Assembly: GCA_002269645.1 (NCBI GenBank)
Contig: NIVC01002209.1
Coordinates: 1-64,000 of the forward strand
Direction: 5' to 3'
DNA: 64,000 nucleotides
Origin: Macrostomum lignano
Taxonomy: Eukaryota
Shown here: positions 31,350-41,118 of the stretch, piece after piece
How the letters are laid out: each line of letters begins with the position of its first letter
How positions within the stretch are numbered: position 1 is the first letter of the stretch
The notes under the pieces: generated by a model
What the model was told of the DNA's origin: nothing
Databases searched by the model: none
Seen by the model: the letters and a program-made list of their open reading frames with translations, nothing else
Made by a program: the position numbers and the translations under genes

Positions 31350-32255
31350 TATATCTTCGTATACTTCGTATACGAGCTATTCTCCGCCAAAAATCTACTT
31401 GGGATAAGCAAGAGTACTATTTCTGCAGCTGAATATTTAAGACGCACGACACTACTACGACTACGGCTACGACTACGACTGTACTACTACTACTCTACTA
31501 CCACTACTACTACTACTGCAACTACTAGTGCTACTACTACTGAAAATCTAGCTTCAACTGATCCGCAGTGCCCAGTCGCCTGTGACCAGGGGCTGTGCAG
31601 GCGGCGATCTGTGACCAGACGCCGCCAACTGCGACTAGTGGCCTGCCTGGCTACTTCAAATAACTGCTTACCAGTACGTCTCTACTACGACTACGCCTAC
31701 GACTGCTCTACTACTACTCTACTAATACTTGTACTACTACTACTTCCATTACTACTACTACGAGCTACTACTGCAACTACTAGTGCTACTACTACTGATA
31801 ATCTAGCCTCAACTGATCTGCAGTGCCCAGTCGCCTGTGACCAGGGGCTGTGCAGGCGGCGATCTGTGACCAGACGCCGCCAACTGCAACTAGTGGCCTG
31901 CCTGGCGACTCAATTTTCTCAGTTCTCAAAGTTCTCAGTGCTCTGTTTTAATTTAATATTTGTTCTCAATTCTACGGGCGTAAATAACTTATTTGTTGAA
32001 CTTTTCAAGATGCTTATTCATACACTTCTACGCTCTAAATCTGTTTTTCTATAGCACCTAACATCTTTAATATTTTTTGTGCAAGGCTTTAAGCTGCCAA
32101 TCTTTAACCAATCAGCGTGCTTCAACTCACGTTTTTAACTAATTATGCGTACACATCTTTACTCAACACTGCTCAGTGCACCCCCAAAAGTCGCATATAT
32201 ATATATTGAAATTATGTTACAATAACTTCACTGCCAATATATTTGTTTTTAAACC

Positions 32256-32311
32256 CGAATAAATAAACCCTGACGAAGGCCCAGTCTGGGCCGAAATATC
32301 GGTTTTTTTCG
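32256..32311 (+). ncRNA. Minimal type-I hammerhead ribozyme, copy 1 (predicted cleavage after C32300)
   Basis: Stem I AAACC/GGTTT, core CTGACGA(A), stem II GGCCC(A)-GTC-(T)GGGCC, GAAA, palindromic A-TA-T in place of stem III, AUC cleavage triplet. Confidence 0.88.
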
Positions 32312-33330
32312 AACATTCGACAACTGGCAACCTTCAATATCTTCCGAGTGCGTGGTTTGCAGTTTCAAACTGCCTTATGAATATCTGTACCCAGGACCGG
32401 ACTATTATTGAGGCTCGCCATGTTTGTCAACAAAATATCTTCGTATACGAGCTATTCTCCGCCAAAAATCTACTTGGGATAAGCAAGAGTACTATTTCTG
32501 CAGCTGAATATTTAAGACGCACGACACTACTACGACTACGGCTACGACTACGACTGTACTACTACTACTCTACTACCACTACTACTACTACTGCAACTAC
32601 TAGTGCTACTACTACTGAAAATCTAGCTTCAACTGATCCGCAGTGCCCAGTCGCCTGTGACCAGGGGCTGTGCAGGCGGCGATCTGTGACCAGACGCCGC
32701 CAACTGCGACTAGTGGCCTGCCTGGCTACTTCAAATAACTGCTTACCAGTACGTCTCTACTACGACTACGCCTACGACTGCTCTACTACTACTCTACTAA
32801 TACTTGTACTACTACTACTTCCATTACTACTACTACGAGCTACTACTGCAACTACTAGTGCTACTACTACTGATAATCTAGCCTCAACTGATCTGCAGTG
32901 CCCAGTCGCCTGTGACCAGGGGCTGTGCAGGCGGCGATCTGTGACCAGACGCCGCCAACTGCAACTAGTGGCCTGCCTGGCGACTCAATTTTCTCAGTTC
33001 TCAAAGTTCTCAGTGCTCTGTTTTAATTTAATATTTGTTCTCAATTCTACGGGCGTAAATAACTTATTTGTTGAACTTTTCAAGATGCTTATTCATACAC
33101 TTCTACGCTCTAAATCTGTTTTTCTATAGCACCTAACATCTTTAATATTTTTTGTGCAAGGCTTTAAGCTGCCAATCTTTAACCAATCAGCGTGCTTCAA
33201 CTCACGTTTTTAACTAATTATGCGTACACATCTTTACTCAACACTGCTCAGTGCACCCCCAAAAGTCGCATATATATATATTGAAATTATGTTACAATAA
33301 CTTCACTGCCAATATATTTGTTTTTAAACC

Positions 33331-33386
33331 CGAATAAATAAACCCTGACGAAGGCCCAGTCTGGGCCGAAATATCGGTTTTTTTCG
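33331..33386 (+). ncRNA. Minimal type-I hammerhead ribozyme, copy 2 (cleavage after 33375)
   Basis: Same sequence as copy 1. Confidence 0.88.
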
Positions 33387-34405
33387 AACATTCGACAACT
33401 GGCAACCTTCAATATCTTCCGAGTGCGTGGTTTGCAGTTTCAAACTGCCTTATGAATATCTGTACCCAGGACCGGACTATTATTGAGGCTCGCCATGTTT
33501 GTCAACAAAATATCTTCGTATACGAGCTATTCTCCGCCAAAAATCTACTTGGGATAAGCAAGAGTACTATTTCTGCAGCTGAATATTTAAGACGCACGAC
33601 ACTACTACGACTACGGCTACGACTACGACTGTACTACTACTACTCTACTACCACTACTACTACTACTGCAACTACTAGTGCTACTACTACTGAAAATCTA
33701 GCTTCAACTGATCCGCAGTGCCCAGTCGCCTGTGACCAGGGGCTGTGCAGGCGGCGATCTGTGACCAGACGCCGCCAACTGCGACTAGTGGCCTGCCTGG
33801 CTACTTCAAATAACTGCTTACCAGTACGTCTCTACTACGACTACGCCTACGACTGCTCTACTACTACTCTACTAATACTTGTACTACTACTACTTCCATT
33901 ACTACTACTACGAGCTACTACTGCAACTACTAGTGCTACTACTACTGATAATCTAGCCTCAACTGATCTGCAGTGCCCAGTCGCCTGTGACCAGGGGCTG
34001 TGCAGGCGGCGATCTGTGACCAGACGCCGCCAACTGCAACTAGTGGCCTGCCTGGCGACTCAATTTTCTCAGTTCTCAAAGTTCTCAGTGCTCTGTTTTA
34101 ATTTAATATTTGTTCTCAATTCTACGGGCGTAAATAACTTATTTGTTGAACTTTTCAAGATGCTTATTCATACACTTCTACGCTCTAAATCTGTTTTTCT
34201 ATAGCACCTAACATCTTTAATATTTTTTGTGCAAGGCTTTAAGCTGCCAATCTTTAACCAATCAGCGTGCTTCAACTCACGTTTTTAACTAATTATGCGT
34301 ACACATCTTTACTCAACACTGCTCAGTGCACCCCCAAAAGTCGCATATATATATATTGAAATTATGTTACAATAACTTCACTGCCAATATATTTGTTTTT
34401 AAACC

Positions 34406-34460
34406 CGAATAAATAAACCCTGACGAAGGCCCAGTCTGGGCCGAAATATCGGTTTTTTCG
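34406..34460 (+). ncRNA. Minimal type-I hammerhead ribozyme, copy 3 (cleavage after 34450)
   Basis: Same core as copy 1; T6 instead of T7 in distal stem I. Confidence 0.88.
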
Positions 34461-38704: not shown

Positions 38705-38760
38705 CGAATAAATAAACCCTGACGAAGGCCCAGTCTGGGCCGAAATATCGGTTTTTTTCG
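38705..38760 (+). ncRNA. Minimal type-I hammerhead ribozyme, copy 7 (cleavage after 38749)
   Basis: Same sequence as copy 1. Confidence 0.88.
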
Positions 38761-39779
38761 AACATTCGACAACTGGCAACCTTCAATATCTTCCGAGTGC
38801 GTGGTTTGCAGTTTCAAACTGCCTTATGAATATCTGTACCCAGGACCGGACTATTATTGAGGCTCGCCATGTTTGTCAACAAAATATCTTCGTATACGAG
38901 CTATTCTCCGCCAAAAATCTACTTGGGATAAGCAAGAGTACTATTTCTGCAGCTGAATATTTAAGACGCACGACACTACTACGACTACGGCTACGACTAC
39001 GACTGTACTACTACTACTCTACTACCACTACTACTACTACTGCAACTACTAGTGCTACTACTACTGAAAATCTAGCTTCAACTGATCCGCAGTGCCCAGT
39101 CGCCTGTGACCAGGGGCTGTGCAGGCGGCGATCTGTGACCAGACGCCGCCAACTGCGACTAGTGGCCTGCCTGGCTACTTCAAATAACTGCTTACCAGTA
39201 CGTCTCTACTACGACTACGCCTACGACTGCTCTACTACTACTCTACTAATACTTGTACTACTACTACTTCCATTACTACTACTACGAGCTACTACTGCAA
39301 CTACTAGTGCTACTACTACTGATAATCTAGCCTCAACTGATCTGCAGTGCCCAGTCGCCTGTGACCAGGGGCTGTGCAGGCGGCGATCTGTGACCAGACG
39401 CCGCCAACTGCAACTAGTGGCCTGCCTGGCGACTCAATTTTCTCAGTTCTCAAAGTTCTCAGTGCTCTGTTTTAATTTAATATTTGTTCTCAATTCTACG
39501 GGCGTAAATAACTTATTTGTTGAACTTTTCAAGATGCTTATTCATACACTTCTACGCTCTAAATCTGTTTTTCTATAGCACCTAACATCTTTAATATTTT
39601 TTGTGCAAGGCTTTAAGCTGCCAATCTTTAACCAATCAGCGTGCTTCAACTCACGTTTTTAACTAATTATGCGTACACATCTTTACTCAACACTGCTCAG
39701 TGCACCCCCAAAAGTCGCATATATATATATTGAAATTATGTTACAATAACTTCACTGCCAATATATTTGTTTTTAAACC

Positions 39780-39835
39780 CGAATAAATAAACCCTGACGA
39801 AGGCCCAGTCTGGGCCGAAATATCGGTTTTTTTCG
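39780..39835 (+). ncRNA. Minimal type-I hammerhead ribozyme, copy 8 (cleavage after 39824)
   Basis: Same sequence as copy 1. Confidence 0.88.
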
Positions 39836-39904
39836 AACATTCGACAACTGGCAAACCTTCAATATCTTCCGAGTGCGTGGTTTGCAGTTTCAAACTGCCT
39901 TATG

Positions 39905-41118
39905 AATATCTATCTATCTATCTATCTATCTATCTATCTATCTATTTATCTATCTATCTATCTATCTATCTATCTATCTATCTATCTATCTATCTATCTA
40001 TCTATCTATCTATCTATCTATCTATTTATCTACCTATCTACCTATCTATCTATCTATCTATCTATCTATCTATCTATCTATCTATCTATCTATCTATCTA
40101 TCTATCTATCTATCTATCTATCTATCTATCTATCTATCTATCTATCTATCTATCTATCTATCTATCTATTTATCTACCTATCTACCTATCTATCTATCTA
40201 TCTATCTATCTATCTATCTATCTATCTATCTATCTATCTATCTATCTATCTATCTATCTATCTATCTATCTATCTATCTATCTATCTATCTATCTATCTA
40301 TCTATCTATCTATCTATCTATCTATCTATCTATCTATCTATCTACCTATCTACCTATCTATCTATCTATCTATCTATCTATCTATCTATCTATCTATCTA
40401 TCTATCTATCTATCTATCTATCTATCTATCTATCTATCTATCTATCTATCTATCTATCTATCTATCTATCTATCTATCTATCTATCTATCTATCTATCTA
40501 TCTATCTATCTATTTATCTACCTATCTACCTATCTATCTATCTATCTATCTATCTATCTATCTATCTATCTATCTATCTATCTATCTATTTATCTACCTA
40601 TCTACCTATCTATCTATCTATCTATCTATCTATCTATCTATCTATCTATCTATCTATCTATCTATCTATCTTTCTATCTATCTATCTATCTATCTATCTA
40701 TCTATCTATCTATCTATCTATCTATCTATCTATCTATCTATCTATCTATCTATCTATCTATCTATCTATCTATCTATCTATTTATCTACCTATCTACCTA
40801 TCTATCTATCTATCTATCTATCTATCTATCTATCTATCTATCTATCTATCTATCTATCTATCTATCTATCTATCTATCTATCTATCTATCTATCTATCTA
40901 TCTATCTATCTATCTATCTATCTATCTATCTATCTATCTATCTATCTATCTATCTATCTATCTATCTATCTATCTATCTATCTATCTATCTATCTATCTA
41001 TCTATCTATCTATCTATCTATCTATCTATCTATCTATCTATCTATCTATCTATCTATCTATCTATCTATCTATCTATCTATCTATCTATCTATCTATCTA
41101 TCTATCTATCTATCTATC
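39905..41118. repeat. (TATC)n microsatellite, about 1.2 kb
   Basis: Direct reading. Confidence 0.97.

Follow-up and report, generated by a model that had tools for sequence, protein, structure and literature searches.

A candidate retrozyme-like tandem element with a Penelope-like minimal hammerhead in Macrostomum lignano

An array of 1075-bp units in the flatworm Macrostomum lignano (assembly GCA_002269645.1, contig NIVC01002209.1) raises the question of whether the hammerhead ribozyme motif found in each unit marks a mobile element, or whether it is carried by a satellite or a gene family. Positions refer to the window, the whole stretch of 64,000 nt that was analysed. We assign a probability of roughly 0.6 to the array being an insertion, in several head-to-tail copies, of a non-autonomous, retrozyme-like retroelement derived from Penelope-like elements (PLEs), with the minimal type-I hammerhead typical of PLE pseudo-LTRs. 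As such it is a fresh example of an already known class of ribozyme-bearing mobile repeat, and no new kind of system.

Table 1. Coordinates of the array, its parts and its flanks in the window.
Feature	Position	Strand	Remark
(TCTA)84 microsatellite	29379..29714	+	upstream of flank A
Flank A, 1.6 kb	29705..31349	+	directly upstream of array; includes 23-mer minisatellite
Array of 1075-bp units, 7.96 units, head-to-tail	31350..39910	+	5' end ~offset 135, 3' end offset 86
Hammerhead copy 1 (minimal type-I)	32265..32305	+	predicted cleavage after 32300
ORF of 250 aa, ATG start	32377..33129	+	first AUG past cleavage site
Variable centre of one unit	32526..32988	+	two 255-nt sub-repeats
Conserved 3' module of one unit, ~330 nt	33045..33375	+	offsets 745-1075, present in all units
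Hammerhead copy 2	33340..33380	+	predicted cleavage after 33375
Hammerhead copy 3	34415..34455	+	predicted cleavage after 34450
Hammerhead copy 4	35489..35529	+	predicted cleavage after 35524
Hammerhead copy 5	36564..36604	+	predicted cleavage after 36599
Hammerhead copy 6	37639..37679	+	predicted cleavage after 37674
Hammerhead copy 7	38714..38754	+	predicted cleavage after 38749
Hammerhead copy 8	39789..39829	+	predicted cleavage after 39824
(TATC)303 microsatellite	39907..41118	+	joined to unit offset 86; like junction in L001, L002
Flank A', direct duplicate of A	41119..42711	+	downstream of (TATC)n

Array layout and the hammerhead motif

Units follow each other at 1075 bp, with a single exception of 1074. 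Among the seven complete units, six match one another at 100%; unit 3 differs by a 1-nt deletion and a C>T change, and the partial unit at the end by one additional A. The first unit opens with ATATCT and a 9-nt local duplication (CTTCGTATA), and the final bases before the microsatellite are ..GAATATCT. Flanks A and A' are 98.9–99.9% identical outside the minisatellite and their homology ends at the identical base (..GCAAATTGG), the 5' side of the array adjoining flank A and not a microsatellite.

Within the unit centre, each sub-repeat is composed of an (ACT)n-rich stretch and a GC-rich double hairpin (CCUGUGACCAGG / GGCGGCG..CGCCGCC). The 3' module holds AACCAATCAGCG (33181-33192), CATATATATATATTG (33269-33283), AATAAATAAA (33333-33342) and the hammerhead, in the order of CCAAT-like, TATA-like and AATAAA motifs followed by the hammerhead. 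The unit RNA is not unusually folded (z = -0.9, 50% paired). The Pfam scan, which covered ORFs of the window, agreed with an initial sequence-only reading in that neither a reverse transcriptase (RT) nor an endonuclease was found in the unit, and no PLE RT/GIY-YIG ORF was found among the scanned window ORFs.

The exact 27-nt core CTGACGAAGGCCCAGTCTGGGCCGAAA was found eight times on the + strand (32270, 33345, 34420, 35494, 36569, 37644, 38719 and 39794) and not once in 100 shuffles, which bears out the eight regularly spaced copies of the sequence-only reading; its eight predicted cleavage positions likewise coincide exactly with the C17 coordinates. The layout is AAACC-CUGACGA-A-GGCCC(AGUCU)GGGCC-GAA-AUAU-C/GGUUU, with the slash at the predicted cut after C17, between GAAAUAUC and GG. 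Across the two strands of the window, a relaxed minimal-hammerhead descriptor returned these eight sites and no others. The motif is not a chance product, because this descriptor had no match in 20 Mb of first-order Markov sequence; it had none in 300 simulated 56-kb sequences either. Minimum free energy folds of 41-nt and 76-nt segments consisted of exactly helix I and helix II with an open core. Helix III is possible only as an intermolecular 4-bp helix of A/U pairs throughout.

The Rfam check proposed with the original observation came out negative: the hammerhead covariance models did not report the site at gathering score or, in a 111-nt slice, at E<=10. No compensatory changes were available in the helices, the sole helix change in the diverged copy (L001, below) being one that abolishes the top helix II pair.

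Four idiosyncratic hallmarks are listed for the minimal hammerheads of PLEs (Cervera & de la Pena 2014, PMC4209133), and by direct reading all were found in the window motif: an unpaired extra A that follows A9 and precedes G10.1, pairing of G10.1 with C11.1, a palindromic U15.2/A16.2 without loop 3, and a short helix I (5 bp) with a GC-rich helix II (5–6 bp). In the metazoan PLE hammerheads, for example in Cercyon of Schistosoma mansoni, the motif is likewise type I and without helix III or loop 3, with the same palindrome, unpaired base and pair, a helix I of 4–5 bp and a helix II that is long and GC-rich, and is expected to act only as a dimer (PMC4209133); the Schistosoma example, too, comes from a flatworm. 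They differ in that the array hammerhead flanks no RT/GIY-YIG ORF, in hammerhead separation (1075 bp against ~3 kb), in helix II (5–6 bp against 7–8 bp in Schistosoma) and in the identity of the array copies, which contrasts with the extreme heterogeneity of the Schistosoma motifs (PMC4209133). Sequence features support the central assignment, to a minimal type-I hammerhead of the PLE kind in a non-autonomous retrozyme-like tandem element; the sequence-only interpretation as a whole is partly supported.

Copies at other loci and related elements

The family was also found at two further loci of the same assembly. L001 lies on another contig and consists of a single copy, cut off at offset ~222 and flanked by (TCTA)191 and (TATC)632. 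L002 contains arrays which begin at offset 390, immediately after (TCTA)n; its units vary in sub-repeat number and one carries a hAT-like MITE with an 8-bp TSD. The tandem organisation is real, as L002, assembled independently, has multi-unit arrays with unit-specific differences. All three loci share the 3' end, unit offset 86 (AUAUCU) joined to (TATC)n/(ATCT)n, and their 5' starts differ. Known traits of PLE insertions are truncation at the 5' end, a bias towards microsatellites and, in non-autonomous members, several copies inserted head to tail (PMC8557442), and the three-locus pattern of a fixed 3' end, varying 5' truncation, multimers and a (TATC)n target fits these traits.

Between the window and L001, the hammerhead is identical at 40/41 positions and the preceding ~300 nt at 94–96% (94–98% with the hammerhead included), against ~80% in the unit centre and 73% in the tail after the cleavage site (offsets 6-86). 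The 86-nt stretch past this site is fast-evolving. The hammerhead is conserved no better than its 300-nt upstream neighbour, and the constraint could therefore be on a promoter and not on catalysis.

Two GenBank gene models, BOX15_Mlig029405g1 and BOX15_Mlig001677g1, show overlap with the family. As the M. lignano annotation was made from RNA-seq-guided transcripts (PMC5730564), these models are indirect evidence for sense-strand transcription.

Metazoan non-LTR retrozymes (PMC7229834; 10.64898/2026.07.22.740005) share with the array head-to-tail repeats, a type-I hammerhead in each unit, relatedness of the hammerheads to those of PLEs, low GC (43%) and the lack of LTR, PBS and PPT; most of their families have <=7 units per array. 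Their units are ~170–400 bp long against 1075 bp, and their hammerheads are canonical with loop-loop contacts and not minimal, as is the case for those retrozymes whose circRNAs have been demonstrated (Cervera & de la Pena 2020, PMC7229834). Unlike them, the array unit has a long open frame and an RNA that is not unusually structured, and its circRNA is a predicted one. The novelty initially seen in the monomer size was overstated, since published consensus lengths of 51–972 bp (Li, Clavereau & Pollet 2026, bioRxiv 10.64898/2026.07.22.740005) make 1075 bp just marginally larger.

Non-autonomous PLEs such as MRC1/Chlamys, described from Chlamydomonas (Craig et al. 2021, PMC8557442), also form 5'-truncated head-to-tail multimers inserted in microsatellites, hence with unreadable TSDs. 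They have no canonical hammerhead and target (CA)n or (C)n, whereas the array has a hammerhead and (TATC)n; for these elements, 3'-end similarity to an autonomous partner was demonstrated. Newt satellite 2, Schistosoma Sm-alpha and cave-cricket pDo500 resemble the array as transcribed tandem repeats with type-I hammerheads, an unstable helix III and dimers, but have canonical contacts between helix I and II loops, a 1–2-bp helix III with loop and units of 330–500 bp, and are recognised by Rfam Hammerhead_1.

Origin of the array

According to the preferred reading, the array would be transcribed in the hammerhead sense. A lone minimal hammerhead would be unable to build helix III, and two hammerheads on a multimeric transcript would pair through the AUAU palindrome to a double hammerhead with a shared 4-bp helix III. 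Each would cut after C17, giving RNAs of 1075 nt, with a 5'-OH at one end and a 2',3'-cyclic phosphate at the other, which an RtcB-type ligase could circularise. An RT acting in trans, most probably the RT/GIY-YIG enzyme of a PLE, would use microhomology with AUAUCU (offset 81-86) to prime at a nick in a (TATC)n target and copy more than one unit length from a circular or uncleaved multimeric template, resulting in identical tandem units of which the first is 5'-truncated. More-than-unit reverse transcription on a circRNA template is the model proposed for PLE hammerheads (PMC4209133), and the near-identical units fit one recent event of this sort. Since the 3' end of the insertion is found 86 nt past the cleavage site, the template would have run across a hammerhead site that was intact or had been religated, which would rule out a cleaved linear monomer.

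Several observations count against this reading: the silent Rfam models, a helix III limited to 4 intermolecular A/U pairs, the weak in vitro cleavage of minimal PLE hammerheads (PMC4209133) and the lack of available compensatory changes; a unit RNA not unusually structured, unlike described retrozyme circRNAs; hammerhead conservation no higher than that of the upstream 300 nt; no PLE RT/GIY-YIG ORF among those scanned in the window; and a 5' side that abuts flank A rather than a microsatellite. The common offset-86 junction could also descend from one ancestral locus spread at the DNA level.

Such an ancestral junction would equally suit an ordinary satellite or macrosatellite, homogenised at the DNA level and bearing a functionless fossil PLE hammerhead, which we regard as unlikely. 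Possible routes of its spread are unequal crossing-over, ectopic exchange among (TATC)n tracts and the reinsertion of eccDNA. The genome is extraordinarily rich in tandem repeats (15% simple or tandem repeats, PMC5730564; 89 TRF rows in the window), and large duplicated chromosomes are present in the DV1 line (PMC5730564). Near-identity of units is expected after recent unequal exchange, differences of whole 255-nt sub-repeats among L002 units are a pattern of DNA-level slippage, and the array ends fall on ATATCT motifs, from which (TATC)n could expand in situ. What argues for the retroelement instead is one constant 3' end as opposed to three distinct 5' starts, the contrast between hammerhead plus upstream module (94–98%) and adjoining tail and centre (73–80%), transcription of the family according to the transcript-based annotation, and a complete, undecayed PLE-type hammerhead.

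A fixed 3' end with varying 5' truncation is also the classical signature of TPRT, and LINE-type machinery could have recognised an (AUCU)n 3' tail in a SINE-like manner, with read-through multimers ending in the microsatellite as template, the hammerhead as a leftover or 5'-processing device, and neither PLE enzymes nor circular RNA involved. Sense-orientation (ATCT)n closes all arrays, and (ATCT)n likewise terminates a dispersed repeat of ~210 nt in the window that is unrelated to the family (45770-46005, +; 55290-55510, -), which suggests a common tail-dependent system, so that an (ATCT)n-tail LINE system and not a PLE could be the mobiliser. We consider this doubtful, and less probable than the satellite, given that the hammerhead architecture is specifically that of PLEs, that microsatellite bias and head-to-tail multimers are known for PLEs whereas LINE/SINE insertions are normally single units, and that no (ATCT)n-tailed LINE was identified in the analysis.

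The open frame in each unit

The ORF of 250 aa, which was missed in the sequence-only reading, recurs at 33452, 34526, 35601, 36676, 37751 and 38826. It sits within an open frame of 288 codons that starts inside the preceding hammerhead and spans 80% of the unit. This length is statistically unusual (reached in 0/2000 second-order Markov simulations), and across the same 864 nt the other two frames contain 30 stop trinucleotides against none.

The units could accordingly be read as a tandem species-specific protein-coding gene (CCAAT/TATA promoter, 250-aa ORF, AATAAA), the hammerhead-like motif being incidental or a regulatory UTR element. In keeping with this, the ORF begins at the first AUG past the cleavage site and is annotated as a protein in GenBank, and the frame remains open in the longer L002 units, the 255-nt sub-repeat being a multiple of 3. 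A gene array is nevertheless highly improbable. Searches of 5.8 billion proteins and of 1.84 billion representatives found no homologue beyond the repeat family, and the ORF has no Pfam domain; its product has a mean AlphaFold2 pLDDT of 42.8 and is mostly (ACT)n-derived T/L/Y runs and Arg runs, the latter a translated GC palindrome. The L001 sub-repeat, at 214 nt, is read in different frames, and a 2-nt deletion as well as an insertion with a stop fall in the C-terminal part of that copy. The AUG stands in a weak context, and the non-coding 3' module is more conserved than the ORF centre.

A chance look-alike or an assembly artefact is hardly credible: the eight window copies, as duplicates, amount to one independent observation, the Rfam models are silent, and over-polishing or mis-expansion could yield a run of identical units, but the descriptor is without matches in random sequence, the idiosyncratic PLE features are all there, the motif is kept in the diverged L001 copy on another contig, and L002 has multi-unit arrays of its own.

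Hammerhead motif of the array

The 27-nt core CTGACGAAGGCCCAGTCTGGGCCGAAA was found eight times on the + strand at a spacing of 1075 bp (one interval being 1074), as the sequence-only reading of this DNA had described, and the eight cleavage positions predicted there were exact. The motif is AAACC-CUGACGA-A-GGCCC(AGUCU)GGGCC-GAA-AUAU-C/GGUUU, where the last slash marks the predicted cut. By direct reading, the type I core (CUGACGA / GAA / A..U / C) is complete in 8/8 copies, with all conserved positions present: C3-U4-G5-A6-N7-G8-A9, G12-A13-A14, A15.1:U16.1 and H17 at the cleavage site. 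MFE folding of isolated 41-nt and 76-nt segments returned exactly helix I (5 bp, extendable) and helix II (5-6 bp), with the core open. No helix III can form within a single motif; only two copies pairing through AUAU could provide one, of 4 bp. When units were cut at the predicted C17, 6/7 full units were 100% identical; in the third, a T7 run is shortened by 1 nt and one C>T is present, and the final partial unit has one additional A.

The core had 0 matches in 100 dinucleotide-preserving shuffles. A relaxed minimal-hammerhead descriptor was also used, consisting of CUGANGA, 0-1 additional nt and a helix II of at least 4 bp in its 5' part, and of GAAA, a 0-6-nt palindrome, U, H and a helix I of at least 4 bp (G-U permitted) in its 3' part. 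Its sole matches in the window, with both strands searched, were the eight array sites, and it gave 0 matches in 300 simulated 56-kb sequences and 0 in 20 Mb of first-order Markov sequence. Based on these zeros, the specificity of the descriptor and the MFE fold, the motif is considered real and not a chance match.

Comparison with the Rfam hammerhead models, which the sequence-only reading had proposed as a check, went against it. Hammerhead_1 and its relatives gave no match in the window at the gathering score, nor in 3 kb or even a 111-nt slice at E<=10, and the matches returned were noise alone (mir-34, MH_s25), with no RNA family of any sort. This silence is expected for a motif with an inserted base and no helix III, but the non-recognition still counts as a failed membership test for the type I hammerhead.

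Minimal hammerheads were defined in the pseudo-LTRs of Penelope-like elements (PLEs) by Cervera & de la Pena (PMC4209133), where the listed features emerged though absent from the search descriptor. The list comprises an unpaired base between A9 and 10.1, a conserved G10.1-C11.1 pair and palindromic 15.2-16.2 positions, with helix I short (4-5 bp) and helix II long. In the motif described here the inserted base is seen in CUGACGA-A-GGCCC, the G10.1-C11.1 pair is present, helix II (GGCCC/GGGCC plus a possible A-U closing pair, 5-6 bp) is longer than in canonical metazoan hammerheads, the 15.2-16.2 positions are palindromic without loop 3 (GAA-AUAU-C) and helix I is short (AAACC/GGUUU). Every feature listed in PMC4209133 is thus present, and the earlier description as a minimal type I hammerhead with a palindromic stem III holds. 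Minimal hammerheads are unable to close helix III alone and are thought to work as dimers through the palindrome, and their cleavage in vitro is weak (PMC4209133). Metazoan retrozymes with demonstrated circRNA carry canonical and not minimal hammerheads, and a 2020 study separates canonical retrozyme hammerheads from the PLE-like minimal ones (PMC7229834). Since the motif is minimal and those of the circRNA-proven retrozymes are canonical, the ribozyme was grouped with PLEs and not with classical retrozymes. No relevant paper linking Macrostomum with hammerheads or Penelope-like elements was found in the literature searched. PLE-type minimal hammerheads are now extended to Macrostomum, and standard covariance models (current Rfam) miss this class.

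Unit anatomy and open reading frame

The features of the unit, the related loci and the rest of the window are listed with their coordinates in the table.

Features of the array unit, related loci and surrounding DNA. Positions are those of the window unless an offset or locus is given; unit offsets take the predicted cleavage after C17 as their origin (first copy cut after 32300). L001 and L002 are two other 20-kb M. lignano loci with the same repeat family.
Feature	Location	Details
Array	~31350 to 39910	7.96 units; offset ~135 at start, offset 86 at end
Tail	offsets 1-86	begins GGUUUUUUU; ATATCT at 37-42 and 81-86
Third ATATCT	offsets 135-140	
Two 255-nt sub-repeats	offsets ~226-690	each an (ACT)n-rich stretch, then a GC-rich double hairpin
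GC-rich ~90-nt double hairpin	32620-32735, 32875-32985, every unit; L001 10106-10650	two CUGUGACCAG hairpin tops
3' module	offsets 745-1075	AACCAATCAGCG 881-892; CATATATATATATTG 969-983; AATAAATAAA 1033-1042; hammerhead
Hammerhead	offsets 1040-1075	extending to offset 5 of next unit
Open frame	offset 1038 to offset 829 of next unit	288 codons, 80% of every unit
250-aa ORF	32377-33129 and six further copies	starts at first AUG past predicted cleavage
Solo copy of the family	L001 10010-11146, different contig	flanked by (TCTA)191 and (TATC)632
MITE-like insertion, 1.2 kb	L002 7515-8741, inside one array unit	TIRs CAGTGTTGGGCA, 8-bp duplication CTTACCAG, hAT-like
Flank A, 1.6 kb	29705-31349	adjoins array 5' side; preceded by (TCTA)84
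Flank A'	41119-42711	follows (TATC)303
EGF/laminin-G exons	6473-7099	minus strand
Ty3/gypsy-type LTR retrotransposon, degraded	18478-22405	successive broken ORFs with zinc knuckle, aspartyl protease, RT and RNase H
IAP-like gene	26704-29178	BIR domains and C3HC4 RING; directly upstream of (TCTA)84
~210-nt dispersed repeat	45770-46005 (+), 55290-55510 (-)	~78-85% identity between the two copies
GPCR exon	50651-51214	

The unit has a GC content of 43.2%, and its 3' module includes promoter-like motifs. The MFE of the unit RNA was -247 kcal/mol with 50% of bases paired (z = -0.9 vs 30 Markov-1 sequences), so that the RNA is not unusually stable and a viroid-like compact rod fold is not supported. 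The double hairpin is identical across subfamilies that are otherwise ~20% diverged and, being invariant between them, offers no covariation test. No tRNA or tRNA-like promoter was detected within the window by ARAGORN.

The 288-codon frame starts inside the preceding hammerhead. Over the same 864 nt, 30 stop trinucleotides are present in the other two frames and 0 in the open one; 288 codons were reached in 0/2000 second-order Markov simulations, with P(>=200 codons) = 1.4%. Openness on this scale is statistically unusual. An artefact of (ACT)n runs open in two frames was ruled out, since 1075 mod 3 = 1 and one frame therefore appears twice in the dimer. Over 81% of its length, the 250-aa ORF shows 100% identity to the M. 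lignano product BOX15_Mlig029405g1, and it partially matches BOX15_Mlig001677g1 from the same species; no homologues outside the repeat family were found among 5.8 billion or 1.84 billion proteins. As the sequence-only reading had stated, no RT or endonuclease is encoded in the unit, whose ORF has no Pfam domain. AlphaFold2 gave the product a pLDDT of 42.8 and no confident fold, and exact-product look-ups for the 250-aa ORF and for two small minus-strand ORFs across the hammerhead returned nothing on record. The two RRRSVTRRRQ stretches of the product are the GC palindrome translated. In the diverged L001 copy, the sub-repeat is 214 nt long and read in differing frames, and the C-terminal part of the ORF has lost 2 nt and gained a stop-containing insertion. 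Most probably the ORF has no function or became open only recently.

Related loci, insertion junctions and classification

The ORF matches yielded two further M. lignano loci of the family: BOX15_Mlig029405g1 and BOX15_Mlig001677g1 both map to GCA_002269645.1, which gave the 20-kb loci L002 and L001. The L001 copy runs from ~offset 222, through the hammerhead, to offset 86 adjoining (ATCT)n. The L002 arrays lie within multi-kilobase (TCTA)n tracts, start at offset 390 right after the microsatellite and end at offset 86; the count of 255-nt sub-repeats varies from unit to unit, and units reach lengths of 1365-1618 bp. Because the L002 arrays have differing units, the tandem organisation is regarded as real and not as a window-specific artefact.

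Identity between the window unit and L001 was ~80% in the centre, 96.5% at offsets 745-829, 93.8% at offsets 830-1039, 97.6% (40/41) in the hammerhead and 72.8% in the tail right after helix I, which places the hammerhead within the best-conserved block, together with the promoter-like motifs. The sole hammerhead change in L001 removes the top pair of helix II, with no compensatory change. Two GenBank gene models overlap loci of the family and have the orientation of the hammerhead; as the gene models of GCA_002269645.1 derive from RNA-seq-guided transcript assemblies (PMC5730564), this gives indirect support for transcription of the family in the hammerhead sense. Four metagenome matches to a degenerate family pattern were taken as unrelated, having no helix I and no unit similarity. 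On the low-GC environmental JGI metagenome contigs L005 (153-186) and L006 (2551-2583), CUGANGA-N-GGCC...GGCC-GAAAUAUC was observed with good helix II hairpins, no helix I and no resemblance to the unit, and was taken as unrelated.

The 3' end of the element is constant in the window array, L001 and L002, lying at offset 86 in AUAUCU and adjoining (ATCT)n, while the 5' starts differ (offsets ~135, ~222 and 390). Variable 5' truncation, head-to-tail multimers and microsatellite context are insertion traits of PLEs and non-autonomous PLEs (PMC8557442); all were found here, with the constant 3' end and the microsatellite target.

The closest known counterparts are the PLE minimal hammerheads of other flatworms and metazoans, metazoan non-LTR retrozymes, and non-autonomous PLEs with head-to-tail insertions. 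Like metazoan non-LTR retrozymes, the element consists of tandem units with a type I hammerhead, has low GC and lacks LTR, PBS and PPT. It departs from them in two defining traits, the hammerhead, which is minimal where theirs is canonical and efficiently cleaving with helix I/II loop contacts, and the unit size of 1075 bp, against a typical 170-400 bp (reported range 51-972 bp). Their unit is also non-coding; the unit here has the 288-codon open frame, which is unlikely by chance and for which neither homologues nor a domain nor a confident fold were found. Retrozyme consensus lengths span 51-972 bp in a 2026 preprint, which gives <=7 units for most families and makes the case that animal retrozymes arose from the pseudo-LTRs of PLEs (bioRxiv 10.64898/2026.07.22.740005). 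Eight copies of 1075 bp are thus at the edge of the known range and not outside it. The ORF for an RT with GIY-YIG endonuclease that defines an autonomous PLE, between its pseudo-LTRs, was not found in the unit or among the other window ORFs scanned with Pfam, which matched solely Ty3/gypsy RT/RNase H, IAP, GPCR and EGF. In all the sequence features compared here, at the ribozyme and the insertion level, the element agrees with a PLE-derived non-autonomous element. The earlier assignment to hammerhead-bearing tandem retroelements is upheld in kind by the hallmarks of the minimal hammerhead and the PLE insertion traits; the novelty attached to the unit size is not.

A PLE/retrozyme-type interpretation is supported in kind, and the following mechanism is proposed. 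The array would be transcribed in the hammerhead sense, two hammerheads of one multimeric transcript would pair via AUAU and cut after C17, and the monomers would be ligated into circles. A trans-acting reverse transcriptase would use microhomology between AUAUCU and nicked (TATC)n for priming and copy more than one unit length. The same model of more-than-unit copying has been proposed in the PLE hammerhead literature (PMC4209133). As the integrated 3' end lies 86 nt beyond the predicted cleavage and the internal hammerheads are intact, the template spanned an uncleaved or religated hammerhead site.

A LINE system dependent on the (ATCT)n tail is a live alternative to PLE as the mobiliser: an unrelated ~210-nt dispersed repeat also adjoins (ATCT)n, at two sites, one in each orientation. 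The family could also have spread at the DNA level, with the offset-86 junction inherited from a single ancestral locus. A cleaved linear monomer as the template is excluded by the 3' junction 86 nt beyond the predicted cut.

The array and its (TATC)303 tract are bracketed by a direct duplication, of which each copy (flanks A and A') is preceded by a (TCTA/TATC)n tract; the 5' side of the array in the window adjoins flank A and not the microsatellite. Outside an internal 23-mer minisatellite, the identity of the two flanks is 98.9-99.9%, and their homology ends at the same base. Their origin could lie in target duplication on a very long scale, in template switching or in an independent segmental duplication. 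Apart from minisatellite similarity, neither flank A nor family B was detected in L001 or L002.

Ribozyme-bearing tandem retroelements (retrozymes, PLE derivatives) are widespread, and their copying and insertion have so far been inferred. In this family the insertion scars are unusually legible, with a fixed (TATC)n 3' junction, variable 5' truncation and an almost perfectly homogeneous 8-mer, and the host is a model flatworm amenable to transgenesis. The family could serve to test more-than-unit reverse transcription from circular RNA. Its value is that of a clean, recent and experimentally tractable example, not of a new principle. We consider it improbable that the 1075-nt hammerhead-delimited RNA is both the retrotransposition template and the messenger for an orphan protein of 250 aa in which two stretches are rich in arginine. 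If so, the family would be an RNA element of an animal genome that codes for a protein, is processed by a ribozyme and may be circular, and its scars (3' junction 86 nt beyond the cleavage, identical multimers, 1.6-kb flanking duplication) would be direct evidence of circle-templated rolling reverse transcription.

Remainder of the window

The window is animal DNA, very rich in micro- and minisatellites (89 TRF rows). The tandem repeats include kilobase-scale (TATC)n, (GTTTA)n and 14- to 28-mer minisatellites, interspersed with exons. The best database match of the IAP-like gene was M. lignano BOX15_Mlig012803g1 and, as this is just 41% identical, the copy in the window appears to be unannotated in GenBank. 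The end of the ~210-nt repeat adjoins large (ATCT)n tracts in sense orientation (46099-47336 and 54421-55284), an arrangement that suggests an (ATCT)n-tailed retroelement family in the M. lignano genome.
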